A DNA stretch of 64,000 nucleotides from Stegostoma tigrinum (taxonomy: Eukaryota). The position numbers and the translations under genes are program-made. How positions within the stretch are numbered: the first letter of the stretch is position 1; each line of letters opens with the position of its first letter. Below are positions 9,738 to 60,550 of the stretch, in pieces. The stretch spans positions 132,792,933-132,856,932 of the forward strand of contig NC_081356.1 of the NCBI RefSeq assembly GCF_030684315.1. Reading direction: 5' to 3'. A model generated the notes under the pieces. It was not told the DNA's origin, did no database searches, and saw only the letters and a program-made list of their open reading frames with translations.

Positions 9738-10758
9738 TCCCTCCAAATATTTCTTATTTATGTACATATCTAAATGTCTTTTAAACTTTGTAACTGTACT
9801 CGCATCCACTGGAAGTCCCTTCCACACACAAACCACTCACTGTGTAAAAAAAAACTTGTCCCTCATTTCTTCTTAAAATCTTTCTCTCACCTTAGAAATA
9901 TTCCACTTAGTCTTGAAGTCTTCCACTCTAGGGAATATACACCAGCCATTCGCCTTATCTGTACCATTAATGATTTTATAAACCTCAATGAGGTCACCCT
10001 GCAACCTCCTACACTTCATTGAACAAAGGCCCAGCTCATCCAGCCTTTCCCCATAACTCAAACCCAGCCACACCCTGGTAAATCTCTTCTGGATTCTCCC
10101 CAGCTTAATAATATCCTTCTTATTAACAGGGCAACTAGAACTGCACACAGTACTCCAGAAGAGGCCTCACAAATATCTGTACAATCTCAACTCCTCTACT
10201 CAAAGATTTGATCAATGAAGACAAGAATGATAAATGCCTTCTTAACTACCCTATTTATATGTGGTGCAAATTTCAAAGAATTATGTACCTAAACCCCCAG
10301 GTACCTGTGTTCTTCAACACTACCCGAGGTGCTACTTTCAATTGCATAAGTTTGTTTTACTGCCCATGTTTTGTTTACTTTTATTTTGTTAGTTTTTATA
10401 AGTAGGATTTTTAAAATTTTAAAAACATGGTTTTTCTTAGATATGTATTGATATTTTTTGATGGCCGGAACCTATCCAAATGACTGTCATTATAAAATAT
10501 GCTTTCCATTTGGGAATTTGCCCGTTGAGAGATTTTCCAAGAATGTAACTCTCCTTGAGCTGTAAGACTCTGTTGTACTCTTCTTTATCCCATTTATCCC
10601 CTCGCTGTGTGTCTTTGCCTGCATTACTCTTTCCTGTCCCACATAATTCCTTGCTCTGTGTCCTTCTCTGTATTACTGTTCCCTGTCCCACTCATTGCCT
10701 CAGTCTGTGTCCTTGTCTGTGTTCCCTATCCCACTCACTGTCCTGGTTTACTCTTCAG

Positions 10759-11504
10759 AGACAATGCAGACTCACCGGCGAAAGCCAAAACATCTGGCAA
10801 GAGGAAAGCCAAGAAGCGCACAATAGCAGAAACATCGAATGTCATCACAGAAACCCTGCCATCCATCCAAGAAACGGATACCGTAGAAATTGACCAGGAG
10901 AATGTTTTTGCTGCGGAGATCGTGGAGATCAACGCAGAAGAGATAGAAGAGGAGGCTAGGGCTACTGTGATGGAAGCAGTGGAGAACCTGCCAACAGCAG
11001 ATGAGTCAGCACAGCCATCTGGTGATGTGACAGGCTCGGAACAACCGGCCGAATCAGCACTTGCTCTTCTCGCCGATATCACCAGCAAATACCAACAGGA
11101 TGAGCTGGACAAGGAGCTGGAGAAGGAAGGGGAACGGGAGTCTGCAGGCCAGTCCCAGGAGGAGTCCGAAACATCCATTGTAACAGAGGATGGGATCCAC
11201 ATCGTGGAAGTGCTGGCACAGGGTGACAAACTGTTCTGTTGTGAGAAATGCAGCCGCTCCTTTAGACTCTTTTACCACTTCAAGGAGCACCTGAAGGTGC
11301 ACTCGGGGGAGAACTATGTATGCCACCTTTGCAGCAAACAGTACACACGGGAGAGCGCCTGGAAGCAGCACCTCTCCTCTCACCGAGAAGAGGAAGGTGG
11401 GAACAAGAAACCAAGGTGTGTTCGCAAAGTGCATGTGTGTCAGTACTGTGAGAAACAGTTTGACCACTTTGGACATTTTAAAGAACATCTTCGAAAGCAC
11501 ACAG
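10759..11504 (+). CDS. ZNF131: ZNF131 large coding exon (basic NLS-like segment, acidic linker, zinc fingers 1-3)
   Basis: ctcttcag acceptor and G|gtaaga donor; 746 nt, phase 2-1. Contains KAKKRTIAETSNVITETLPS, SALALLADITSKY and CQYCEKQFDHFGHFKEHLRKHTG. Confidence 0.96.
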
Positions 11505-12239
11505 GTAAGAAGTGTCATCAATACTGTGCCTTTGCCCTCCAAGATCTTACTGTTATCCTCAGATCATTGAATGATACAAGACAGAAGGTGGCCATTGGGC
11601 TCATTGCGTCGGTGCTGGCTCTTTGAAATATTTGTCCTGGTGTCCTCTCCTGAAAAATCTTCTAATTTGAGTATTTATCCATTTCTGTCTTGAAACTTAT
11701 TATCAAGTCTGCTTCCACTGTATTTTCAGGAAGTGCATTCAGATCCTAACAATCAATAAAAATGATATTGCATTAAATCTGTGCCCTCCTTGCTGATTCT
11801 GCTGCTGGTAGAAACAGTTTCTGTTTATTTGCTTGATCAGTTTCTCCTCATCTCTGTCATAAATGGGTAATCATTTATTTTCTAACTGTGAACTCTATTC
11901 CTAAAATTTCTCACAAGAAGAAACAACCTTTCCACATCCTGATTAGTAAGGGGATTGAAGGTTACTGGGAGAAGGCAGGAGAATGGGGCTGAGAAACACA
12001 TTTGCCATGATCAAATGGCAGAGCAGACTAAATGGGCTAAATGACCAAATTCTGCTGCAGTGTCTTATGGTCACATGTAACCTATCATTTATTATTTTGT
12101 TTTGAGGATAGCAAAGTAACTGCCTGGTATCATTCTGGTTTCTGGATAGGAGAACATGGTATTTGGATTGATTCATTTCACAGATGTGTCCAAAGCCTTG
12201 GAGCAATGAATGGTGAAATCTACTCTTTTACTTCCTCAG

Positions 12240-12370
12240 GTGAGAAGCCCTTCGAGTGTCCAAACTGTCATGAGCGATTTGCCAGGAATAGCACACTGAA
12301 ATGTCACCTGGTGGCCTGCCGAACGGGTATGGGTGCAAAGAAAGGAAGGAAGAAGATGTACGAGTGTCAG
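12240..12370 (+). CDS. ZNF131: ZNF131 coding exon (zinc finger 4 and start of finger 5)
   Basis: cttcctcag acceptor and CAG|gtacag donor; 131 nt, phase 1-0. Reads GEKPFECPNCHERFARNSTLKCHLVACRTGMGAKKGRKKMYECQ. Confidence 0.96.
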
Positions 12371-13129
12371 GTACAGAGTATTGAGCAACACAGCCCACCC
12401 ATTTCCCAAAGGCCCACAGAGACACAGCAGATTGCATTCTTACAGCCCCTCATGGGTAACAAAACATCCCAATGTGCTCCTTTGGGATGTTACAAAACAA
12501 AATATACAGTATCTGGTGAAATTAGAATAGAAGGCCAAAAGTTTGGCCACATTTTCCGGAGACTCTTATAGAAAGGTATGATAGGTGGAGAGGTTGAGGG
12601 CTTTGAATTCTGACCCTAGTGCTCAGTCAGATACAGGCTTGGCTATCAATGCTGGAGGAGTTCAAATTAGATACAACAGAGATCAGAATGACCAGGAACC
12701 AGAATCAGAGAAACATTGCAATCTGTTCGAGCTAGAGAAAGATACAGCGTCGGAGGAGTGAGTCTACAGACAGAATTGGAAACAACAATGAAGCGTGTTA
12801 GGTGTTACCTATAATTATATGCCATGATGGGTCATGAATTTTGGGAAATTATTTATTGCGCTTTTAAACATACTCTATAGCCAATGTCATGAGTTGCAAA
12901 ATTAGACATTTTGTTATTGTATGACAGTTGGAGGTTCAGAAAGCAGGGCAATATTCTACAGCAGATTAAACCATGATGTCCCAATGCATTTCTGCACCCG
13001 GTCTGCTTCAGCTTTTTATGTTTGGACAGTGATGAGGCCACGTAGGCAAGAGTCGTTTCCAAGATAACGCTTGGGTATTCTGGTTCGGGGGGTGACACTG
13101 CTAACTCCACTTGTTATTTTCAATCCCAG

Positions 13130-41175: not shown

Positions 41176-41209
41176 GAGGAAGTACAGAAACATTTGAAGT
41201 AACTTCTCT
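41176..41209 (+). promoter_or_regulatory. Putative proximal promoter of Siglec-15-like gene 1 (ETS/PU.1-type site and conserved 15-mer)
   Basis: GAGGAAGT at 41176-41183. TGAAGTAACTTCTCT at 41195-41209 is identical to 60417-60431 upstream of the paralogous leader exon. Confidence 0.55.
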
Positions 41210-41259: not shown

Positions 41260-41323
41260 ATGATAAGTCCTGTCTACATTTGGCTTTCCACAATCCTGCT
41301 GTCAGTCTCAGTGCAGGGTTCTA
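41260..41323 (+). CDS. Signal-peptide exon of Siglec-15-like gene 1
   Basis: Reads MISPVYIWLSTILLSVSVQGS then A|gtcagt, a phase-1 donor compatible with the exon at 47764. Homologous to 60493-60550. Confidence 0.75.
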
Positions 41324-42149
41324 GTCAGTGTTTTCCTACGCTAACTGATCAAATTTGTTTTGTTAACGTGTAATTGCTGTTTTCATGATCTGCTAACTTA
41401 ATTATAGTGACCAAAGCCTTGTGTTAACCAACACTAGGTGTCATGGTCTTCACTGAGTTTCTAAACTGGAAGAAACGTTTGCCTTACCAACGCACATCAA
41501 AACAGGGTACAATTATTTAACTAAAACCACTAAACCAATACTGCACGAGCATCAAGTCAGGCAGCACAAAAAGGAACATAGGAAATGAGAACAGGAGTAC
41601 GCCAACTAAATCTTCAGCCTGCTCTGCCAACTAATATGATCATGGCTGATCGTCTAACTCGATACTTTCTTGCCCTTTAGCTCTAAGAACTATATCTATA
41701 AGCTTCTTGAAAACATTCTATGTTTTGGCACTAACTACTTTCTGTGGCAGAGAATTCCACAGTCTCACCACTCTCTGGGTGAAGAAATTTCTCCTCAACT
41801 CAGTCGTAAATTATCTACCCCATATCCTCATACTGTGACCTAAAGTGATGAGGGCACTCAAACTGTGACGGGTGAAAAACATGCTTCAGTCACAGCCAGG
41901 CTTCAGAGAGAGACAGAGAGAGACATGCTAACTTGTTGGATGTACATGAAAATCCAAACCTGCTGTTTCATCTAAATGAATGCTGCTGTCAGGCTCACCA
42001 TTCAGATTTATTGAATGATATATAATTGCTGTTTCTATGAGGCAAATACAAACTAAATCCATCACAGAAAATAGGGACACAGCATACTTCAGTAAAGGAG
42101 GTTGGGGTTGTATTCCTTGAAACTGAGAAGGCTGAGGGGTGACACGGTT

Positions 42150-45100
42150 GAGATTGATTGATTATTTATTGTTGTCGCATATGCTATGATACAGTGAAAA
42201 GTATTGTTTTGCAAGCTATGCAGGCAGATTGTACCACAGAAAGTACAGCAGGGAAGTAGCACAGGATGCAAAATATACTCAAGAGTGCTCCAGCTGCAGA
42301 GAATGTGCAGAGAGAGAGAGCGAGATCACAATTAACATTTGAAAGCTCTGTTCAAAAGCCTGATGACAGCATGGAAGAAGCTGTTCTTGAATCTGACTGT
42401 ACATGTATTCAACTTTAAATCTTGTGCCTGATGGAAGGCAGTATAACCAGATGGGAAGGGTCTTTGATTATGTTGGTAATTTTCCAGAGGTAGCAGGAAG
42501 TATACACAAAGTCAATGGATGGAAGGCAGATTTGCATGATGGACTGGGCTGTGTTGATGACTCTCTGTAGTTTCTTGCAGTCTGGGGAAGAGCAGTTGCC
42601 ATACTGTGCTGTGATGCATCTAGATAAGATGCTTTCTAAGGTGCATTTCTAAAAATTCATAGAATCCCTACAGTGTGGAAATAGACCATTCGGCCCAATA
42701 AGTGCACACCGCCCCTCTGAAGAGTATCCCACCCAGGCCCATTCCCCTAATTTCCTGTATCTAACCCACCTAACCTAAACATCCCTGGGTGCTATGGACA
42801 ATTTAACGTGGCCAATCCACCTACCCTGCACACCTTTGGACTGTGGGAGGAAACTGGAGCTCTCAGAGGAAACCAACGCAGACATGGGAGAATGTGCAAA
42901 CTCTACACATACAGTCACCCGAGGCTGGAATTAAACGTGGGTCTCTGGTGCAGTGAAGCAGCAGTGCTGACCACTGAGCCACTGTGCCGCTCTGGTGCAA
43001 GTCCTTGTGGACTTGCCAAATTTCCTTAGCTTTCTGAGGAAGTAGCGACACTGTTGTCCTTTCTTGACCATCACATTGAAGTGGGTGAACCAAAACAGAT
43101 TATTGGTGATGGATGGGCAGGGAGCAAATGGACACAGACCCTTAGAAAATAGATGACAGGTTAGACAGAGGATCTTGATCGGCGCAGGCTTGGAGGGCCG
43201 AAGGGCCTGTTCCTGTGCTGTAGGTTTCTTTGTTTTTTGTTCTTTGTGATCATCACTCCCAAGGCCTGGTCACTCAATCATCTCTGCCACAGCACTGTTG
43301 ATGCAGACAGGAGTTTGTCTTTAATTCTACTACCTGAAATAATGACTAGCTCCTTCATTTTACTGACGTTGGTGGAGAGATTGCTGTCTTTACACCATGC
43401 CACTAAGCACTCAATTTCTTTCCTGTATTCTGTATCGTCATTGTTTGAGATTTGGCCTACAACTGTGGTGCCATTAGCAATATCATAAATGGAGTGGGGG
43501 CAGAATTTGGCCACATAGTTGTGAACATATAAGGAGTGTCGTGGAGGGCTGAGTATGCAGACGTGCGCGACACAGGTGTTGAGCATTATGATGGAAGAGG
43601 TGTTGTCGCCTACTCTTCCTGATTGCAGTCCATAGGTCAGGATGTTTGAGGATCTAGTTTTAGAGGAGGAGCTGAGACCTAAGTCTGAGAGTTTAGAGAT
43701 GAGTTTGTTGGAATTATGGTGTTGAAGTTGGAACTGTAGTCAATAAGTAGGAGTCTGACTGCAGTATATAAGTCATCCTGATGTTTCAGGGATAAATGTA
43801 GGGCCAGGGAGATAGCATTTACAGTGGACCTGTTGCTCTGGTAAGTGAATTACAAAGGATTTTTTTCATTAACGGGATGAGGGCATCACTGGCTAGTCAG
43901 CATTTATCACTATCCCTAATTGTCCAGAAGGCAGTTAAGAGTCAAGTGGGTCTGCAGTCACATGTCAGTCAGACCAGATAAGGATGGTACTTTCCTTCCC
44001 TAAAGGACATTAGTGAACCAGATGGGTTTTTCCTAACAATCGACAATAACAATCGTCATCATTAGATCCTTAATTCCAGATATTTTATTGAATTCAAATT
44101 CCACCATCTGCCGTGGTGGGATTTGAATCCGGGTCCCCAGGACATTATCTGGGTCTCCGGAATGACAGACCAGCAATCATACCACTAGGCCAACATCTCC
44201 TCATAGGAGGATCAAGGCAATTTGGTAGGCTGGAGTTGATGTGAGCCATGACTAACTTCTTGAACCACTTCATAATGATGGCCATCAAAGCCAGCAGTCA
44301 GCAGTCATTGAGACACACTGTATGATTTTCTTTTGGCATTGGGATGATGGGTGGTCTTCTTGAAGCAGGTGGGGACCTCTGATTGGAGTAAGGCGAGATT
44401 AAAGCTGCCTGCAAGTACTTCTGCCAGCTGCTCTGCACAAGACCTGAGTGCACGGCTGGGGACTCCATCGAGGCCAATCACTTTCCATGAGTTCACTCTC
44501 AAGAAGGTCAATCTGATGTCTGCAGAAGTGACTGTGGGTACAGGTGTAACTGAGGCTTTTGGGATAGGTGACATTGTTTCACGGACCTTCTCGTTCAAAG
44601 CGAATACGGAATGCATTGAGCTTGTCGGGTAGGGATGTACTGTTGCCTGTGATTCTGCTTGACTTTGCTTTGTGGCCCACTATGTCATGTAAATCTTGAC
44701 ACAAACTACAGGTTTCCTTGTAATTAATATGAGTCTCAGGCTTAGTTTGGTATTGTCTCTTGGCATCTCCAACGGCCTTGTGGAGGTTGTATCTGGATTT
44801 CCTGTATAGATCAGGGCTGCCTGATTTGTACGCCTCAGATCTGCCCTTCAATAGGGAGTGGATTTCCTGGTTCATCCCTGATTTCTAGTTGGGGAACATT
44901 TGGATTAATTTCTTCATTTATTAATGTCTTCTACACACATACTAATGAAGTTTGTAATGGTATTAGCATACCTGCTTAGGTTAGCTGCTGAATATGGACC
45001 AGTCCACTGACCCTAAGCAGTCCCGTAGAAAGTCTTAAATTGCCTCAGACCAGCACTGTACTGCTTTCTGTACTGTGTCCTTACACTTCAGTTGCTGTTC

Positions 45101-45780
45101 GTAAGTTGGGAGGAGGAGCATAGTGTTGTGATCTGATTTTCCAAAATGAAGATCAGGGATGGAGTAGTAGGCGTCTTTGATGGTTGTGTAGCAATGGTCA
45201 AGGACGTCCAGAGCTCTGATTGGACAGGAGACATGTTGTTGGTATTGTAGCAACATGCTCTTGAGGATGGCCTGGTTGAAGTCACTAGATACGAGCACCT
45301 TGGAGTATTCTGTCATAAGACTGTTTGTACCTTTGTATACTCCATCAAGTGCACTCTTCACTTCTGCATGGGGTGGGATGTAGACTGCTATTGGGGTAGC
45401 AAAGGTGAATTCATGTGGCAGGTCGTAGGGATGCCATTTTGCCGTAAGATATTCTAGCGAGCAGCAATTCGCAAGGTTCACCACGCCTGAGCACCAGGAC
45501 GTGTTTATTGAGAGACAGGCCCCACCGCACTTTGCCTTGCCTGAGGAAGTTTAGTGGTTCATTCAGTGAATTGAGAAACCCTGAGGTTGTAAGGCACAGT
45601 TAAGTATAGCAGGCGTGAGCCATGCCTCTGTTAAAGAGAGCACACAGCAGTCTCTTAATTCCCTCTGAAAGGTGAGTTGAGCTTTAGCTTCATTCATTAC
45701 TGTTCTCAGCAGCTTGGGCATTTGCCAGGAATATGCTGGGGAGAGGGAATTGTGAAATCCTGAATCTTTAGTCTCACCTG
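42150..45780 (-). mobile_element. Rex1/Babar-like LINE (APE + RT), decayed and interrupted by SINEs
   Basis: APE motifs CVLSLTEAWL, VYIPP, SDFNQA, LDHCYT and SDHN; RT-region VPTCFKKTT and DIANGTTVVGQISNND. Confidence 0.82.
42660..42990 (-). mobile_element. HE1-type SINE
   Basis: Same head, core and tail as 19800-20118. Confidence 0.85.
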
Positions 45781-46704
45781 AAGACCAGCATGTCTTCCAC
45801 ATTTCCCAGGTAGGTGGCTGCTCCTAATCGATCCTGGACGTAGGTGAAGGAAGTCTGCTACTCCACAAGAATTCCAAAATTGTTAGGGGATAGAGATGGA
45901 GAAGACAGGAGGAACCTGTTTCTCTTGGCAGAGAGTTCAAAATTCAAGCCAAATGGCAGAAAGATTAGATAGAACAGGAGAAAAATTGATCCTAATGCAG
46001 AGGTTGAGGGAGTGTCTGGCATTTGCTGCTTGAGTTGATGGGGGAGACAGACAGCCTGAACTCTTTTAAAAGAAACCTGGATTTGCATGTTACGTGCTGT
46101 ATTCTACAGGGCTAGTGCACATATGCAGGAAGATGGGATTAGAAAGAGCATCTGGGTGTCTTTGGGTTGGCATGGACAAGATGGGCAGAATGGTTCTCTT
46201 CTGTGCTGTATCATTTCTATGGGTCTATGCCTCTAGTCTTTGACCATCCTCTTGCTGTTTGCTCACTGAAATCATTGGTGAGACATTTAAGGTAGTGTGC
46301 CTCATTACCCATTTTCATAAATTTGGTGTCTGTCAGGACCATGTAGATACACTATTATATGCGTTATAAAGAGGCTGGCCAGTCTGTGAAAATTGACACA
46401 CAATCCTGTAAAGTGGCTCCCAGAAGTTACATGACTGTCCTTGTTGATTTACTACAGCCAGAAAAGTAATGCCGTGTTATGTCAGCAGGAACCACAAAGG
46501 GAAACATTTAGAATTTGCTTAATTCTTCTAAAGGTGTGAGAATTCAAAGCTTCTGAGAGTGGAATGATACTACTAGAAAACCCATCATAACTGATTTTGC
46601 TATGTGGAATAATGATTCATTAAAGTTAGCGTGGAAGCCATGTTATGTTTTGATTGTTATAAGACAGACTGTGATGCACTATTTTAAAAGAATTCCAAAT
46701 AGAA

Positions 46705-47056
46705 TTATAGAATACTTCCAGTATGGAAGCAGGCCATTTGGCCCATCGAGTCCACACTGACCCTCCAAAGAGCATCTCATCCAAATCCACCCCATTCCTT
46801 TAACCCTACATTTCCCATGGCTAACCCACCTGGCCTGCATATCCCTGGACATGACGGGGTAATTTACCATGGCTAATCCACCTAACCTGCACATCTTCAG
46901 ACTTTGTGAGGAAACTGGAGCACCCAGGTGAAACCCACACAGACGCGAGGAGAATGTGCAAACTTCACACAGGCAGTTGACTGAATGTGGAATCAAACCC
47001 AGGGTCTCTGGCACTGTGAGGCAGCAGTGTTAACCAAAGAGCTGCTGTGCCACCCC
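46705..47056 (-). mobile_element. HE1-type SINE
   Basis: Same head, core and tail as the other copies. Confidence 0.85.
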
Positions 47057-47763
47057 CAAGAGGTGACATGGATGGGAATAGGGAGTGCATAGGGCTGGGG
47101 TTAATGTGAGGGGTGTGAAGGGTGAGGGTTGGAGAGTATTCAGATTTTATTGTAACTGGAATGAAGTCTCACAGCTCTGGATATCTGCAGCCCCTATGTT
47201 TGACTAGGTCAGCCTGCAGTCAGAATACAGCCTTCACTTTCCCCTCCTCCACCTTGCAAGCACTTTCTCTTAAGGCAGGGAAGCTGAGCCAGAAAAATTC
47301 CACAATTCCCACCACCTGCCTCAAGGATGAAAATCCTGGCAATCGGCTTTGTACCGAAGTTGTCTAGCCTGTTCAGCATTTCTAGCATTTTCTTTTTTTC
47401 TTAATAAGTTTCTAGTATCCACTGTATTTTTTTCTTCTGCAAAAATGACAGCATCCTCCATTAAAAAAGGAGATAGAGTTGGCTATTCTTAACTCCACTT
47501 TGGAAGGTATCCCATGTCCTTTTATTCCCTTAATCCCCAAAACATATTCAGCATTTGAGAATCCATGGCTCTCTGGGGTACAGAACTCCAAAGATTCATT
47601 GAATTATTGGAAATTTACAGCACAGGAGGCCATTCAGCCCATTGTGTCAAGATGAGATATCCATCCTTCCCCTCTTCCTGTACTTAGTCAATGCACCATC
47701 TCACCATTTGCTATCCGTGCTGGGTTAATATAACATTAACACTCTCTTTCTTGCCCCTCACAG

Positions 47764-48144
47764 ATTTTTCTGCTCATGATTGGTCAATGACAGTCGCAGA
47801 TGGTGTGAGGGCTGAGAAAGGATTTGCTGTTTTACCCTGCAGCTTCACCCACCCAGACACTAATGTGACACTCACTAGCTCCATGATATGGATTAAATCT
47901 AACAAAGGTGTTATCTTTAACTGTACATATTCTAGTCCAGGCCATTCTCAGGGTGAGCTATGTGAGAATGTGATACAGCTGGACAGTGGGAATCAATTTA
48001 GTTTGGTGGGGAACTTCAGCAACAAAGACGTTTCAATAATGATGGGCGGACTGAGCCAGGAGGATGCTGGTCTTTATCAGTGTCGAGTGGAGCTCAATAT
48101 TAACAGTTTTCAGACACAACATTGCGTAAAGCTGGAAGTGGAAG
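47764..48144 (+). CDS. Ig V-set exon, Siglec-15-like domain 1
   Basis: Polypyrimidine-cacag acceptor and G|gtgagg donor; 381 nt, phase 1-1. WSMTV..VRAEKGFAVLPCSFTHP, IW, IFNC...ELC, FSLVGN..NKDVSI and DAGLYQCRVE resemble Siglec-15 (WSMQVP..AVLPCTFTHP, ELC, FRLLGN, YFCRVE). Confidence 0.9.
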
Positions 48145-49343
48145 GTGAGGAACAATGTCCTGATGGTGTCACTGCCTGTCACTGCCCTGACAGCTCAATG
48201 GGGAAAGACTCCAGCTAGTCCAGGAAATCTTGCGTTCGCTCCTTGTCCTGGGCTCGTTCAGTTGGTCACAGGTTGGAGGCAGTGAGAAAGAAAGAGATGG
48301 AGAGGAGACTGGGATTTATAGAGCATTCCACCCCAACTGTGAAACCTCTCACAGCCTCTCACACACTCATTTGTCATCTTCAAACTGTCTTGAGTGTTCT
48401 CAGGTAACAAACAAAGAAAACACCACTGAGGATTAAAGCTCCTATGACAGCCCTGTTCTATCACTATTGGGTGAGGACAGGATACTTCTGAGCTCTCATG
48501 GGATCAGCATATTGCGAAGGGGTTGGGGGAATGTGGTGTAATATACTGCTCCCTCCCACTGGTTGAGAACATGAGTTCAGCTCATGTCCAACTACCATTG
48601 ATTGAGAACATCATTGTGTTACTAATTGTCTCTGTTGCCCAAGGATAAGATGGGACAGTTGGTTCCTAAAGAATGACAACTTATTTGATTGAAACATGTC
48701 AGATTCTGAGTGGGCTTGGTAGAAGTTGAGAGGTCCCTAATTTAGTACGGAAGGGAGGAGGAACCTCTGTCAGTGCTGTTCACCTTTGAAGGTGGTAAAC
48801 AGCCATGAAGCTGATCTTCCCCTCACCAAAAAAATCACAATTGGTGTCAAAACATTAACCTGGAATGCATATTTGAATTAACCTGTGCTCATCGTGAACG
48901 TCACAGCTTTGAACTAGTGAAAGGTCACATTAGGAGTGACAGCAGGAGGCTCTACTTCATATAAGGTGTGGTCATACTTAGAATGTGATTCCTGAACAGA
49001 GAGAGCTCAGAGTAGACTGTCGAATCCTTAAACTAATTTAAAAACATATTAACATTTTACATTGAAGGGAGAGATGTTGTGTTCTGAATGAATAGATTTA
49101 GCTGAATTTGGCAGATTTCCTGATCAGTAAGTGTCTTGTGACCAAGGTTTTCAAAATGACAGGTCAGGGGATTGTTGGGGATCATTTTGACTCTTGTAAC
49201 AGAATGCCTAGGATAGACCCATGAGAAACTTGAGGGGAGTTTTAAATTTTCATTTAATTATAAAGTTGAAAGGAATGTAACAAACTGAATCAAGAACTTC
49301 TGCACACTGACCTCATCAATTCTGATGTTTGTCTTTACCTTAG

Positions 49344-49686
49344 CTGCTTGGGGAAATACCTCAGTGGTGAGAAGGCCAGAGGGAGATTCAATTACTTTAC
49401 CCTGTGTCTTCATGACCAGAGACTCCAACACCCTGACCATTGTTACCTGGATGAGGAAGGAGCCCTACGAACATATTGTTACATTTTCAGCCCAATCACT
49501 GGGAACTTGGACAATTGTAAATGGTGGAAATTGAGCTCATCGGGAACCCAGAGGAGGGAAATACCTCGACCAGGATAAACCAGCTGAGTGTGAGGGACAA
49601 TCACACTTACCTGTGTCAGACGGAAGACAGATCAAGACTCAATTTTCAGCACCTGATCCAGAAAGAGACACAGCTACAGGCATATG
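49344..49686 (+). pseudogene. Second Ig V-set exon of the same gene, frameshifted near 49530
   Basis: tttaccttag acceptor and G|gtaaga donor; 343 nt, not a multiple of 3. First frame: EGDSITLPCVF...TWMRKEPY...NGGN*. Second frame: ELIGNPEEGNTSTRINQLSVRDNHTYLC...ETQLQAY. Confidence 0.82.
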
Positions 49687-50375
49687 GTAAGAAACTGTTT
49701 ACATATTCTTCAATTTGTAAACAGTGTACAGTGAGAGTGTAACAGATTCTGTGAACTTCTTCCAATTTGATTTTCTGGTTAAAGGACATTAGCCTAGGTT
49801 CTCCTCACAGGTGTTTTCTGGCCAGCTGAGTATTTGAAGCAATTTGATTTTTATTTCAAATTTCTAGCATCTGCGGTATTTTGCTTTTGTGTTTGAAGTT
49901 TGATTTTTAAAATATTTAATATAATTTGATGTGCTGATCCTTTCAGGTGCATCTTTATGTTCGTAATAAAAGACATTGATACACTCAGAACATTCAGTTC
50001 AATCTCCAAACAACCCAAAGTTACATTGACTTTAAGATCATCGCTTTGAGCAGGAAGGTGCAACAGTCTAATGTGTCCGTCCTGGTTACAATGAAAGTGT
50101 TCACAGTTTCATCAGAAATAGTCCCTTCAGTGCAAGTATATCCCCCAGTGTCCATCTGACTGTGTGAGGCATCACAGCCATGTGGGACCCATCTGAGCCC
50201 TACATTCACATGTGGATTAGCAGCAGGGAGCAGGAATTCTGAGGAGGAAACACGATTGCCAATTCCTACTCAAACCTGATGCAGGAGCTAAAAGCTGCTC
50301 TTACTGTTTTCCAAGCTAAGACTGGGTGAGTCAGCACCAGATTCAGGAAATACCCTGTGGGTTAATTTAAAACAT

Positions 50376-51165
50376 AAGACCATAAAACATAGGAGTGGAA
50401 GTAAAGCCATTTGGCCCATCAAATCAACTCCGCCATTTAAATCATGGCTGATGGGCATTTCAACACCACTTCCCTGCACTCTCCCTGTAGCCCTTGATTC
50501 CTTGTGAGATCAAGAATTTATCAATCTCTGGTTTGAAGGCATCTAACGTCCTGGCCTCCACTGCACTCCGTGGCAATGAATTCCACAAGCCCACCACTCT
50601 CTGGCTGAAGAAATGTCATCTCATTTCTGTTTTAAATTTACCCCCTCTAATTCTAAGGCTGTGCCCATGGGTCCTAGTCTCCCCGCCTAATAGAAACAAC
50701 TTCCTAGATTCCACCCTTTCTAAGCCATTCATTATCTTGTAAGTTTCTATTAGATCGCCCCTCAACCTTCTAAACTCTAATGAGTACAATCCCAGGATCC
50801 TTAGCCATTCATCATACGTTAAACCTACCATTCCAGGGATCATCCGTGTGAATCTCCGCTGGACACGGTCCGGGGCTAGTATGTCCTTCCTGAGGTGTGG
50901 CGCCCAAAATTGGACACAGTATTCTAAATGGGGCCTAACTACAGCTTTATAAAGTCTCAGAAGCACATCGCTGCTTTTATATTCCAACCCTCTTGAGATA
51001 AACAACAACATTACATTCACTCTCTTAATCATGGGCTCTACCTGCAAGTTAACTTTTAGAGAATCCTGGACCAACACTCCCAGATCCCTTTGTACTTCTG
51101 CTTTACGAATTTTCTCACCATTTAGAAAATAGTCCATGCCTGTATTCTTTTTTCCAAAGTGCAAT
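50376..51165 (-). mobile_element. CR1 LINE 3' fragment
   Basis: ORF 50616-51185 contains VRPHLEYCVQFWAP and LYSLEFRRLRGDLI. Confidence 0.9.
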
Positions 51166-52355
51166 TCCAAAGTGGGCATATCCATCTAAACTTATGTTTT
51201 GTGCCACAGAATTAAGCAGCTGCATCTTTCAGGAGTTGTTCTGATCTATAATGCACTAGCTGAAAGTGCAGTGGAGAGAGATTCAACGGGAACTCTCAGG
51301 AGATAATTGGGTAAGTATTGGAGGGGAGCAAATTACAGGTCTGTGGGAAGGGAAGAGGGAGAGGGATGAACGGGATTGCTCCATTTAAGAATGGCCACCT
51401 TTTCTGCTGCAAGATTGTATAATTCCACATGACAGTTGCACAGAACTAGTACCTCAGAGAACATCCATCTCGTCAAAGCGAGAAAGGAAGGTGAGCTGAG
51501 GCAAGAGAGGGCAGAGCTGTAGGTGCTCGTAAGATGCTGCTTGGTCTGCTATGTTCATCCAGCTCCACACTTTGTTATCTTAAAGGCAAAGTTGCTAGTT
51601 TTGAAATGAAGATGTGGTCAAAATGCTTCCACATTTGTAGAGAAAATATGAAGGCCATATATATTGGAGCATTACTGACCAATCATGTGAAATAAAATAT
51701 TATTACCTGATGACTGGATGAAATGTGGACCTTCCTAACAATGAATAGTTTAATAGTACAGATACATTGAAGGGAAAGCAAGATGAGTACAGAAGGCACC
51801 TAGAATAGAAGGGCATACATTGGACTGGATGAATTAGAATGGGAATAACCTTGTTGGAACATTGACGCTGGTATTGGCTAAACAGCCTTTTTATGCGTTC
51901 AATCTAATTGTCTGTAGCCTTGTCCCAGGTCCCATCGCAGGAAAGTGGGACATAATGGTACTCTGAGAACCAGGACTTTGTGATGGTGGGAGTTACATCA
52001 GGTATTAAGAACTGAGGCCTGGGACTATTGGGGTGCTCCGATGCTTAGGTTGGGAAGTGGCATGTGAACTTTGGGCAGGAGCAGGGGCAGGAACCAGGCC
52101 ATGAATCAGGTACAGCATCTGGGCCATGATTTCTGCCCTGCCAATATTCGCAACTATCTCCACAAGAGATCATTGATGATCCTCTCTGTAAACATATTCA
52201 GTTGCATGTACCAAAGAGAGAGTTTTCAAAGATAGAACAATCCTCACATCCTCAAGGCATCCCAAAGTGCTGTGCAGTCAAATAAAAACTCTGGACGTGT
52301 AAGAGCTTCTATTATGTGGGGAAACCCATACCAGCTAGTTTCAATTGGTTGATGG

Positions 52356-53997
52356 ATTAGAAGACTGAGTTTCGGGCTACTAGATTTGAAAGGATTGAGG
52401 TTAGTAAAGAGGAGGTGTTATCAATTCTAGAAGGCGTGAAGGTAGATAAATCCCCTGGGCCAGATGGGATTTTTCCAAGGATTCTTTGGGAAGCTAGAAA
52501 GGAGGTGACAGAGCCTTTGGCCTTGATCTTCGAGTCCTCATTGTCTACAGGTTTAGTACCAGAGGACTGGAGGATTGCAAATGTTGTGCCCTTATTCAAG
52601 AAGGGCAGTAAAGATGACCCAGGTAATTATAGACCTGTGAGCCTTACATCTGTTGTAGGAAAAGTTTTGGAAAGGATTATAAGAGATAGGATTTATAATC
52701 ATCTAGCAAGCAACAATTTGATTGGAGACAGTCAGCATGGATTCATCCAGGGCAAGTTGTGTGTCACAAACGTCATTGAGTTTTTTGAGAAGGTGGCCAA
52801 GCATGTGGATGAGGGAAGGGCAGTTGACGTGGTGTACATGGACTTCAGTAAAGCCTTTGATAAGGTTCCACATGGTAGGCTATTGGTGAAAATATGGAGA
52901 CATGGGATTGAGAGAGATTTAGCAGTTTGGATTAGAAACTGGCTTTCTGTAAGAAGGCAATGAGTGGTGGTTGATGGAAAATATTCAGCCTGGAGTCCGG
53001 TTACTAGTGGTGTGCCTCAAGGATCTGTTTTGGGACCACTGCTGTTTGTCATTTTTATAAATGACTTGGACGCAGGCATAGGTGGATGGGTTAGTAAGTT
53101 TGCAGATGACTCTAAAGTCGGTGGAGTGGTAGTCAGTGTGGAAGAATGTTGCAGGTTGCAGGGAGACTTGGATAAACTGCAGAATGGGGCTGAAAGGTGG
53201 CAAATGGAGTTCAATGAGGATAAATGTGAGGTGATTCACTTTGGGAAGAATAATAGGAAGGTAGGACACTGGGTCAATGGCAAGATTCTGGGTAGTGTGG
53301 ATGTGCAGAGGGATCTTGGTGTCCATGCACATAGATCCCTTGAAGTTGTCACCCAGGTTGATAGTGCTGTTAAGAAGGCTTATGGTGTGTTAGGTTTTAT
53401 TGGCAGAGGGATTGAATTGCAGAGCTGTGATGTCATGATGCAACTGTACAAAACGCTCGAGCGGCCTCACTTAGAATATTGCCTGCAGTTCTGGTTGCCC
53501 CATTACAGGAAGGATGTGGAAACATTGGAAAAGGTGCAGACGAGATTTACCAGGATGTTTCCTGGTCTGGAGCGAAGCTCCTAAAGAAGAAAGGCTGAGG
53601 GACTTGGGTCTGTTCTCATTGGAGAGAAGGAGGCTAAGAGGAGATTTAATAGAGACATACAAGATGATCAGAGGATTAGATAGGGCGGACAGTGAGAGTC
53701 TTTTTTCGAGGATGATGATGTCAGGTTATACAAGGGGGCATAGCTACAAATTGAGGGGTGATAGATTTAAGACAGATGTCAGAGGCAGGTTCTTTACTCA
53801 GAGAGTGGTAAGGGCGTGGAATGCCCTGCCTGCCAATGTAGTTAACTCAGCCACATTAGGGGCATTTAAACAGTCCTTGGATAAGCATATGGATGATGAT
53901 GGGATAGTGTAGGGGGAGGGGCTTAGATTAGTTCACAGGTCGGTGCAACATCGAGGGCCGAAGGGCCTGTTCTGCGCTGTATTGTTCTATGTTCTAT
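52356..53997 (+). mobile_element. 5'-truncated CR1/HER1 LINE, RT domain through 3' tail
   Basis: ORFs 52415-52963 (KSPGPDG, NYRPVSLTS, DFSKAFD), 52964-53584 (GVPQGS, KFADD) and 53514-53912. Tail GTTCTATGTTCTAT. Confidence 0.95.
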
Positions 53998-54484
53998 GGA
54001 TGAAACCTGCACAGAACCAATAGTCCTCTGAACCACTTTTGTTACAGGTGCCTATTTATTCCAATGCATGGCATGTGCTATGTGGTCACTTACAAACATG
54101 TTAAGTTCAAGGGAACAATGAGCAATTGATACTTGGAAGATTTCTGTGTGACCAAATGCTGGAGTAAGTTATTTAAAATCATGGCTGGCCACCAACAGAA
54201 TTCTCTACGATCCCTGGGAAAATGTGGAAGGTCTTTGGCATTCTCTTGAGCAAGTAGACACTGGCTGGGGTTAACAACTCATCTAAAACATCACATTTCT
54301 GACACTGTAACATTGCACATCATTAGGCTTGGTTATATGCTTTAGTCATGAGTAGGGCTTGAAACTACGGGTTTCTGACAGAGACAGGAGCACCACCATC
54401 TTGGACAATCTGGAGAGTGACTGAACGATAAACACATCTGGGGTTGAGACATTAGAAATCAACATTGTTCTTTCTGTTTTACAG

Positions 54485-54586
54485 TGAGGAGGACTGAGCA
54501 CACCACCATATATCAGCTGGTCATCCCACTGCCCAGCTTCCTGCTCATCATCATCATCATCTTCATTACCTTCAGAAAGAAAGGAG
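54485..54586 (+). CDS. Transmembrane exon of Siglec-15-like gene 1
   Basis: ttctgttttacag acceptor and G|gtcagt donor; 102 nt, phase 1-1. Reads VRRTEHTTIYQLVIPLPSFLLIIIIIFITFRKKG: a hydrophobic span followed by a basic stop-transfer sequence. Confidence 0.82.
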
Positions 54587-54983
54587 GTCAGTTTTGTAGT
54601 GAGTGCTATTTAATAAAGCAATATGATTCTGTGTTGAATTAACAGCAAACAATGACCCTGGATTAATCTTTCCTCACTCATTTTCTTCTCTTCCAACCAT
54701 TTTCTGAAGGCATTAACTTTGTCTTTGGTGGGTTTGGTGAATGGGAGAATGGTAACCTTTTTAATAAACATCAGCCACTCTCTGTTACCTGGCTCACTCA
54801 TGAGCTTTCATGATGTTAGAAAGCTTTAAAACTTCCAGTGTTTCAAAAGAGGTCCATTCAAGTCAACTCCATAAATCGCGAATGGTTGAATCCCCTTTCC
54901 ACTCATCCACACTGTATGGAACCTCAAAGGAACAGAAAGGAAGTTTCAAGCAAACACGGAAAGATCAGTTTTCTTGTTTTCAG

Positions 54984-55012
54984 ATTTCTCTGTAACATTT
55001 TTGTGCCGTTGA
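54984..55012 (+). CDS. Candidate short cytoplasmic terminal exon (DFSVTFLCR*)
   Basis: A strong acceptor (ttttcttgttttcag) about 400 nt after the TM exon, phase-compatible. No homology support. Confidence 0.35.
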
Positions 55013-55924
55013 ACCAAGTAAAATGACATTGTCCAACGTGGGCCTCTCGTACACTGAGCGTCTTTGCCCTACCATTGATAACCATGTTTTCTGGTCTTGA
55101 GACTCTAAACTCTTTCTCCTAGTTTTTAGTTACCTGTTTTAACATCTACTTCTTAGTTTGGTCTCATATTTTTTACGAAAATGCTTCTGTGAAGTCCCTA
55201 TATTACACATGCTATACAATTACAAGTTGTCAACTTTAGGTTTATCATATGTCCAGCATCAGAACTGAAGTGGTTTTAAAAACATTTTCATTTATTCACT
55301 CATGGAATGTAGGCATCTCTGGCTGGTGCTACTGAGAATTGGTGATGTAGAGAATGGATGTTCGTGGATGTGGTGCCAAGCAAGCAAGGCACTTTGACCT
55401 GGATGGTGTCAAGTTTCTTGAGAGTTGAAACTGCACCTATCCAGGCAAATGGAGAGTATTTGTGCCTTGCAGACGGTTGACAAGTTTTGGGGAGCTGGAA
55501 GGTGAATTACTTGTGACTGAATTCCTAGTCTCTGACCTGCTCTTGTAGCCACTGTGCTTTTGTGGCTGGTCCAGTTGAGTTTCTGGTTCACTGGTAACTT
55601 CCAGGATGTTGGTAGTGGGTGATTCATTGATGGTAATGTCGTTGAATGTCAAGAGGCAGTCAGAGATAGTCATTGCCTGGCATTTGTATTGCGTGAATAT
55701 TACTTGCCACCTTTCAGCCCAAACCTGCATATTGCCTAGTTCATTCTGCATTTGAATATCAACTACTTCAATATCTGAGGAGTCATAAATGGTTGTGAAC
55801 ATTCTCGATCATCAGTGAACATCCCCACTTCCGACTTTATGATGCAGGGGAAGATGAAGCAGCTGAAGATGGTTCGGCCTAGGGCTTTCCCCTGAGGAAC
55901 TCTTACAAAGAGGTCCTCCACCCA

Positions 55925-60410: not shown

Positions 60411-60431
60411 CGGAAGTGAAGTAACTTCTCT
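60411..60431 (+). promoter_or_regulatory. Putative proximal promoter of paralogue 2 (ETS site overlapping the conserved 15-mer)
   Basis: CGGAAGTGAAGTAACTTCTCT, about 60-80 nt upstream of the ATG at 60493. Confidence 0.55.
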
Positions 60432-60492: not shown

Positions 60493-60550
60493 ATGAATTC
60501 TCTCTATGTTTGGCTCTTTGCATCCATGTCAGTCTCAGTGCAGGGTCACA
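60493..60550 (+). CDS. Signal-peptide exon of a second, tandem paralogue (remainder beyond the window)
   Basis: Reads MNSLYVWLFASMSVSVQGH then A|gtaagt, a consensus phase-1 donor. Shares TGTCAGTCTCAGTGCAGGGT and flanking homology with 41260-41323. Confidence 0.75.

Follow-up and report, generated by a model that had tools for sequence, protein, structure and literature searches.

What does a Siglec-15-like locus of the zebra shark (Stegostoma tigrinum) encode: a working receptor, or the remains of one? The locus lies within a stretch of 64,000 nt, called the window here and numbered from its first nucleotide (assembly GCF_030684315.1, contig NC_081356.1, positions 132,792,933-132,856,932 of the forward strand). 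An original prediction, made from the sequence alone, described a receptor composed of a leader, two V-set immunoglobulin domains (V1 and V2) and a transmembrane (TM) segment, encoded by a phase-compatible chain of exons. Leader, V1, V2 and TM exons are indeed present, and each has homologues in the corresponding regions of over 100 proteins predicted for sharks and rays. Their phases do not fit together, however: V2 is frameshifted, and thus no V-V-TM protein can be made from this locus. The locus appears to be a single member of an elasmobranch multigene family, set in a tandem cluster, and is, with moderate confidence, best seen as a pseudogene produced by the birth-and-death turnover of that cluster.

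Exon structure of the locus

Searches were run exon by exon. All four exons are on the forward strand and begin at the positions that had been predicted. The leader (signal peptide) exon (41260-41323) opens with an ATG at 41260, followed, as read from the sequence, by a hydrophobic leader, and is 77% identical to the leader of Chiloscyllium P0017. Its donor had been placed at 41317; relatives instead support a site 6 nt further 3' (41323|41324, A|GTCAGT), which yields QGS-N-FS, matching P0017. Both sites are phase 1. The V1 exon (47764-48144; 381 nt, 127 codons, phase 1 to 1) is intact, is enclosed by a 175-aa open reading frame (ORF), and encodes a Siglec-15-type V-set (Pfam V-set, E 5.5e-10). 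The second V-set exon (49344-49686; 343 nt) is of the type found in the family and is present, though disrupted. The stalk and an uncharged TM segment are encoded by the exon at 54485-54586 (34 codons, phase 1 to 1, ending RKKG-G).

The codons split at the junctions equal those in relatives (V1/V2, LEVE-A-AxGN; V2/TM, LQxx-V-(R/K)RTE), and the phase-1 leader and stalk/TM exons are both homologous to those of the elasmobranch V-V family. The TM exon is 55-63% identical to the TM exons of P0005, P0008, P0010 and P0011 (E ~4e-7). Its hydrophobic segment of 20-odd residues has a core without charge and is of the type that, in paralogues, carries tails with immunoreceptor tyrosine-based inhibitory motifs (ITIMs). 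Past the TM donor the frame stays open for a further 18 residues; this extension begins GQFCSE... and resembles the GGFCRE end of Chiloscyllium P0017.

A frameshift in the second V-set exon

At 343 nt the V2 exon has a length of 3n+1, and the frame that enters it from V1 reads ...TIVNGGN before it stops at a TGA (49532-49534). The YLCQTE motif of V2 belongs to a different frame that does not open until 49521. Relatives read NGGN-RY-ELIGNPEEG here, whereas the window has 1 nt in place of the two RY codons, a 5-nt deletion between 49531 and 49533. Each of the two deleted residues, R and Y, is found in 85% or more of the 104 V2 domains compared from the family. In a tblastn comparison of P0006 with the window, residues 6-38 align in frame 2 up to 49531 and residues 41-91 in frame 3 from 49533. 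The two halves are 65-80% identical to the V2 type of the family (TWMRKEPY ... NRYELIGNPEEGNAS ... YLC) and match the Pfam V-set at profile positions 5-49 and 63-102, in different frames. The view of domain 2 as a V-set lacking the arginine (Arg) of domain 1 (YLCQTE) is upheld by these Pfam matches in both halves and by the full V-set of intact relatives.

A frameshift might also be an assembly error, or an allele private to one animal, in what is otherwise an intact V-V-TM receptor; the exons are all ordered and homologous, and intact V-V paralogues are common. The deletion was therefore checked by assembling public DNA reads over 47700-49750. Independently assembled contigs from two zebra-shark DNA samples (two runs) repeat it, with 0-1 mismatch to the window and no gap over the deletion site. 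A separate contig, the only one with CGGTA inserted behind 49531, which restores aat-CGG-TAt-gag (N-R-Y-E), differs from the window at 21 other positions and is thus a paralogue, one in the same genome that has kept this site intact. Furthermore, the loss of 5 nt in non-repetitive sequence is atypical of sequencing error. Two bisulfite runs gave no coverage at the deletion site. Because gap-free contigs come from two samples, next to a contig of the intact paralogue, the deletion is real in the sequenced animal(s) and no assembly slip, and an intact receptor is very unlikely.

A cryptic intron that would restore the frame was considered and rejected, as the sole GT...AG pair near the stop spans ~11 nt, too short for splicing. 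A whale-shark protein, P0120 (Rhincodon typus LOC125487426), was not taken as evidence of a shared deletion, since its path through the frames differs from that of the window. In this RefSeq model, which has no Pfam hit, two V2-type exons are translated in the wrong frame; one part of it is 96% identical to the wrong-frame reading of the window V2. Frame-disrupted V2 exons are thus found in the clusters of other species as well, some of them annotated as coding. Reading through the V2 donor of the window (49687-49751, +) gives GKKLFTYSSICKQCTVRV, which, where the two align, is 74% identical to the C-terminal end of Hemiscyllium P0009 ('pIgR-like'); P0009 seems to represent a secreted V1-V2 isoform that retains the intron.

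Missing signalling exons

Relatives with a similar uncharged TM run on into 3-4 small exons that carry ITIM-like motifs, e.g. ILYAEI, CTYASIV and VTYAAV. When 14 different family tails were compared by tblastn with 54.4-60.6 kb of the window at permissive thresholds, the sole match was the TM exon itself. Over the whole window, tblastn found no convincing exon for a TM segment with a lysine (Lys-TM). The locus therefore has neither of the signalling modules of the V-V family, ITIM tail or Lys-TM, between 54587 and 60493 or elsewhere in the window. A possible 9-aa tail exon had been suggested at 54984-55012 (+). It is probably not an exon: it has no homologue among the family tails, and its split codon would be GAT (Asp), as opposed to Gly in relatives.

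The space expected for tail exons is taken up by transposon insertions. ORFs at 52415-53584 (+), in the V2-TM intron, match a reverse transcriptase (RVT_1), and repeat-like ORFs in the same intron (50616-51185, -) and 3' of the TM exon (55437-55802, -) gave no Pfam hit.

A probable decaying copy of a receptor gene

Members of the family have a Siglec-15-type V1 that retains the Arg expected to bind sialic acid, followed by the family-specific V2 V-set and one of two endings. A Lys-TM with a PLGVK core, for which a DAP12-type adaptor is the expected partner, would make a receptor activating, while an uncharged TM with an ITIM tail would make it inhibitory. The window copy has retained its leader, V1 and an inhibitory-type TM exon, gained a stop in V2 and lost its cytoplasmic tail exons. 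Since the V2 deletion creates a premature stop and the tail exons are gone, normal splicing would give a truncated message, probably targeted by nonsense-mediated decay.

Divergence of the coding sequence is in keeping with this scheme. Among the columns that 85% or more of family domains conserve, V1 has mismatches at 5 of 40 (family median 2; 9 of 86 other V1 domains are as deviant or more) and V2 at 5 of 45 (family median 2; 16 of 104 other V2 domains as deviant or more). The terminal branch of V1 is 0.34 long, against a median of 0.12. V1 is 62-73% identical to orectolobiform members, 73% being its highest identity to any public protein. Such values would fit a locus without a protein model, unlike the leader of the neighbouring gene, which has an exact zebra-shark match in RefSeq (see below). 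No RNA run containing the exons was found in the one run search made, which included the intron and is a weak test of expression. The frameshift, the missing tail, the excess of mismatches and the lack of an RNA run together suggest a decaying copy whose function has probably been lost.

Several observations weigh against a pseudogene. The reading frame of V1 is undamaged, with its four Cys and its Arg in place. Start codon, signal peptide and splice sites are all likewise intact, and the frame of the TM exon is open. The excess of divergence is modest, given the 9 of 86 other V1 domains that are equally deviant, and the search for expression, being a single one with the intron included, was weak. 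Both DNA samples belong to a single study and possibly to a single animal, so that other zebra sharks may lack the deletion. Finally, isoforms that skip V2 are annotated in relatives, and V1 and TM are both phase 1, which makes a V1-only protein possible.

Such a protein would be a functional single-V receptor, made by joining V1 directly to the TM exon and leaving V2 out, with a short tail free of signalling motifs; it might serve, for example, as a decoy or co-receptor. Leader, V1, TM exon and splice sites would allow it, and the V1-to-TM junction would read LEVE-V-RRTE, comparable to LEVEVNRTE in P0005. In the bamboo shark C. plagiosum, isoform X5 of LOC122557009 lacks V2 and stands beside isoform X2 (P0047 and P0023 are two isoforms of one bamboo-shark gene), and V2-skipped models are also found in H. 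ocellatum (P0005), Heterodontus (P0025) and Hemitrygon (P0033 and P0037). Eight relatives combine an uncharged TM with the lack of an ITIM. By contrast, the RNA search returned no transcript, the tail exons are missing, V1 and V2 are both over-changed at conserved positions, and public proteomes hold no matching protein model. We regard a single-V receptor as possible but doubtful, and a pseudogene remains the preferred reading of the locus.

Siglec-15 affinity of V1

In the first domain the Cys25/Cys106 pair is retained, as are the additional pair Cys53/Cys66 and Arg107. All of the Siglec-15 hallmarks that had been named for it (WSM, LPCSFTHP, FNC...ELC and YQCRVE) are found in V1. When V1 was compared with solved structures by phmmer, human Siglec-15 (7zoz_A) ranked first at E 2.1e-10, in an alignment that spans WSM, LPCxFTHP, FxC...ELC and CRVE; pIgR (5e-6) and TIM-3 (9e-6) came next. 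An AlphaFold (AF2) model of V1 has a confidence score (predicted local distance difference test, pLDDT) of 84.6 and places Arg107 beside Cys106 in a predicted F strand (102-110). With this model the top Foldseek match was again 7zoz_A (template modelling score 0.79, 34% identity), and further matches included sialoadhesin, Siglec-7, CD33, Siglec-10 and Siglec-8 and also Nav beta-2. Sequence, fold and the tree placement described below agree on a Siglec-15-type domain 1, which may bind sialic acid through its Arg.

The weaker matches to pIgR, TIM-3 and Nav beta-2, together with the inconsistent automatic names in RefSeq, might indicate a non-Siglec V-set family (pIgR, CD300, TIM or Nav-beta-like) with convergent Siglec-15 motifs. 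Siglec-15 is ahead of these by four orders of magnitude in E-value. In an exhaustive HMMER search of 1.84 billion representatives, V1 gave 191 matches at E 1e-3 or better. When these were ranked by best single domain, nearly all of the leading ones outside the shark and ray family had W[ST]x, PCxFT and CRVE, and those looked up bear the name SIGLEC15 (birds, frog, paddlefish, gar, carp, lungfish). A non-Siglec origin of the domain is therefore exceedingly unlikely.

An elasmobranch family of V-V receptors

Word searches returned more than 100 predicted proteins of this family. They were found in sharks (Stegostoma, Rhincodon, Chiloscyllium, Hemiscyllium, Heterodontus, Scyliorhinus, Mustelus, Carcharodon, Cetorhinus, Pristiophorus and Heptranchias) and in rays (Hemitrygon, Hypanus, Mobula, Leucoraja, Amblyraja, Rhinoraja, Narcine and Pristis). 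A description of the family was not found in the literature searched. It is known only from automatic gene models under inconsistent names: Siglec-15, -12 and -10, pIgR-like, JAML, HAVCR1-like and uncharacterized. The MDIR receptors of skates, reported by Cannon et al. (2006), may coincide in part with this family. A shark-lineage family derived from Siglec-15, as had been proposed, does exist; it is not confined to sharks, as it occurs also in rays and the V2-type domain is present in a chimaera.

Intact members are V1-V2 proteins in which both domains are full V-sets by Pfam (V2 of relatives aligns with positions 5-108 of the 109 in the V-set profile). The second domain of bird SIGLEC15, by contrast, matches Ig_3, Ig_2 and I-set. 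A set of 118 family proteins, some of them isoforms, was sorted by motif, which left 55 unclassified by the patterns. A Lys-TM (CIPLGVKLLAL...) is present in at least 25, and 24 of these 25 lack ITIM-like motifs. In at least 30, an uncharged TM is combined with tails that carry ITIM-like motifs, and the eight relatives mentioned above have an uncharged TM without ITIM. The lack of a TM charge and of an ITIM, which had been predicted, thus applies to the window copy and not to its family. The Lys-TM core, PLGVK, is identical to that of bird SIGLEC15. In Heterodontus and in Scyliorhinus torazame, Lys-TM and ITIM partners from the same species have near-identical ectodomains.

Lys-TM and ITIM members with near-identical ectodomains within a species are the signature of paired receptors, and by these sequence features the V-V family is classed as a paired activating/inhibitory receptor family. 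Its Lys-TM members would couple to a DAP12-type adaptor and its ITIM members to phosphatases. The suggestion that the family consists of adhesion molecules or decoys is at odds with this composition. V1 domains of the family cluster by taxonomic order, a sign of lineage-specific expansion or homogenisation. Paired immunoglobulin receptors of mammals form tandem clusters of activating (charged-TM) and inhibitory (ITIM) members whose ectodomains are nearly identical; these clusters have expanded separately in different lineages and often contain pseudogenes. The family described here resembles them in this pattern, and differs from the CD33-related Siglecs, KIR, LILR and PILR of mammals in that it appears to have arisen independently from the SIGLEC15 lineage and has an all-V ectodomain.

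Relation to SIGLEC15

SIGLEC15 consists of a V-set domain, a C2 domain and a TM whose lysine recruits DAP12. Angata and co-workers are said to have described it, in 2007, as a conserved gene, and it is usually presented as a conserved Siglec that does not expand. Could the locus be an ordinary SIGLEC15 orthologue whose C2 and Lys-TM exons were overlooked? Its V1 has SIGLEC15 as best match, and an N-terminal V-set with the F-strand Arg and the extra Cys pair is present, as in orthologues. However, tblastn over the whole window found no convincing C2 exon and, as stated, no Lys-TM exon; domain 2 is a V-set rather than C2/I, and the tree does not group the locus with orthologues.

A tree of 54 domains was made with IQ-TREE and rooted at its midpoint, with no non-Siglec outgroup. 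In this tree the D1-type domains form one clade (support 100/98), whose two branches are the SIGLEC15 of bony vertebrates and a chondrichthyan group (99/86). The chondrichthyan group contains the first domains of proteins with a V-V-C2 architecture (100/95), from Callorhinchus (LOC103174418, P0137), Mobula (P0149) and Heptranchias (P0142), as sister to those of the V-V family (100/99). The TM contains a Lys in both P0137 and P0149, and P0142 has an ITIM tail. D2-type domains form the other clade (100/98), in which D2 of the V-V-C2 proteins is sister to D2 of the family (100/100); the V2-type domain is therefore common to the chondrichthyan lineages sampled. V1 of the window falls in an orectolobiform subclade (97/95) of the V-V D1 clade, with whale-shark P0020 and zebra-shark P0059 and P0024 as its closest neighbours. 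It thus lies inside the V-V clade, apart from V-V-C2 and from bony-vertebrate SIGLEC15, and an overlooked orthologue is almost certainly the wrong explanation.

The V-V-C2 genes are probably the true SIGLEC15 orthologues of cartilaginous fishes, with both V1- and V2-type domains in common with the V-V family. The C2 domain was kept there, while the V-V family and the window locus are without it; the family would thus be an elasmobranch offshoot that lost C2. The claim that the family is distinct from true SIGLEC15 agrees with this tree, in which the V-V-C2 proteins form a sister lineage to it for both domains. SIGLEC15 of bony vertebrates (human 7ZOZ; bird, frog, paddlefish, carp) shares with the shark family WSM, LPCxFTHP, the extra Cys pair and the Arg of CRVE, and with its Lys-TM paralogues the PLGVK core known from birds. 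It differs in having a C2/I-type domain 2 in place of a full V-set, and the shark family is a tandem multigene family. The window copy differs further in its uncharged TM, missing tail and broken V2.

Other vertebrates show variations of their own. Lungfish (Protopterus annectens) proteins P0126 and P0130 have seven tandem V1 domains and a C2, or V1-V1-C2 with a Lys-TM, and newt (Pleurodeles waltl) P0132 has V1-V1 with ITIM-like motifs; these multiplications of V1 are independent expansions outside the cartilaginous fishes. In ray-finned fishes, P0173 (Polyodon) and P0175 (Labeo), both named SIGLEC15, have an uncharged TM and tails with ITIM-like motifs or motifs of the related switch type (immunoreceptor tyrosine-based switch motif, ITSM), and no Lys-TM. 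Because of these tails, inhibitory forms of the SIGLEC15 lineage may be ancient.

Significance of the family

In sharks and rays the SIGLEC15 lineage has given rise to a large family in tandem arrangement, whose ectodomains consist of V domains alone and whose members include both Lys-TM and ITIM forms. A paired receptor system of Siglec type would thus have been invented independently, at an early point in the history of jawed vertebrates. The window locus adds less to this: a pseudogene-type decay inside the cluster, with a lesion that could be traced across orectolobiform sharks. A more elaborate scenario, which we consider rather unlikely as a whole, combines two elements. In it, a paired system with rapid turnover, analogous to the CD33-related Siglecs of mammals but independent of them, evolved in elasmobranchs from the SIGLEC15 lineage, by gain of the new V2 and omission of C2. 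The window copy would at the same time be a 'disarmed' decoy in which V2 is skipped and the Arg-bearing, sialic-acid-binding V1 sits on a tail-less anchor, competing for ligand with its signalling neighbours.

A neighbouring tandem gene and other features

The next family gene in the tandem, separate from the one described above, begins with a leader exon at 60493-60550 (+; 19 codons). All 19 of 19 codons match the N-terminus of Stegostoma tigrinum LOC125449501 (P0024, P0060), and the sole mismatch in a 20-residue tblastn match to that gene falls beyond the donor. LOC125449501 and other elasmobranch V-V members share with the window copy the leader-V1-V2-TM exon plan; LOC125449501 also has the upstream 14-mer described below and the chromosomal cluster in common with it. 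P0060 differs in having an intact V2 and a tail with ITIM-like motifs, both of which are lacking in the window copy.

A conserved 14-mer, GAAGTAACTTCTCT, is found ~50 nt 5' of the start codon of the window copy (41196-41209, +) and again at 60418-60431, two exact matches in the window against 0.03 expected. The 5' regions of the genes at 41260 and 60493 align at 78% mean column identity, and the 14-mer is probably a shared promoter or 5' untranslated region (5'UTR) element. Alignment of these two regions also raised the idea that the window copy had lost its original start codon. This was rejected, as leaders beginning MIS- are present in the intact proteins P0019, P0021 and P0023. In the gene at 60493 an upstream ATG opens a reading frame of 3 codons (atg att tag) before the real start. 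Located 5' of the receptor cluster, at 10607-12571 (+), are ORFs with C2H2 zinc-finger motifs, which belong to an unrelated gene or repeat.

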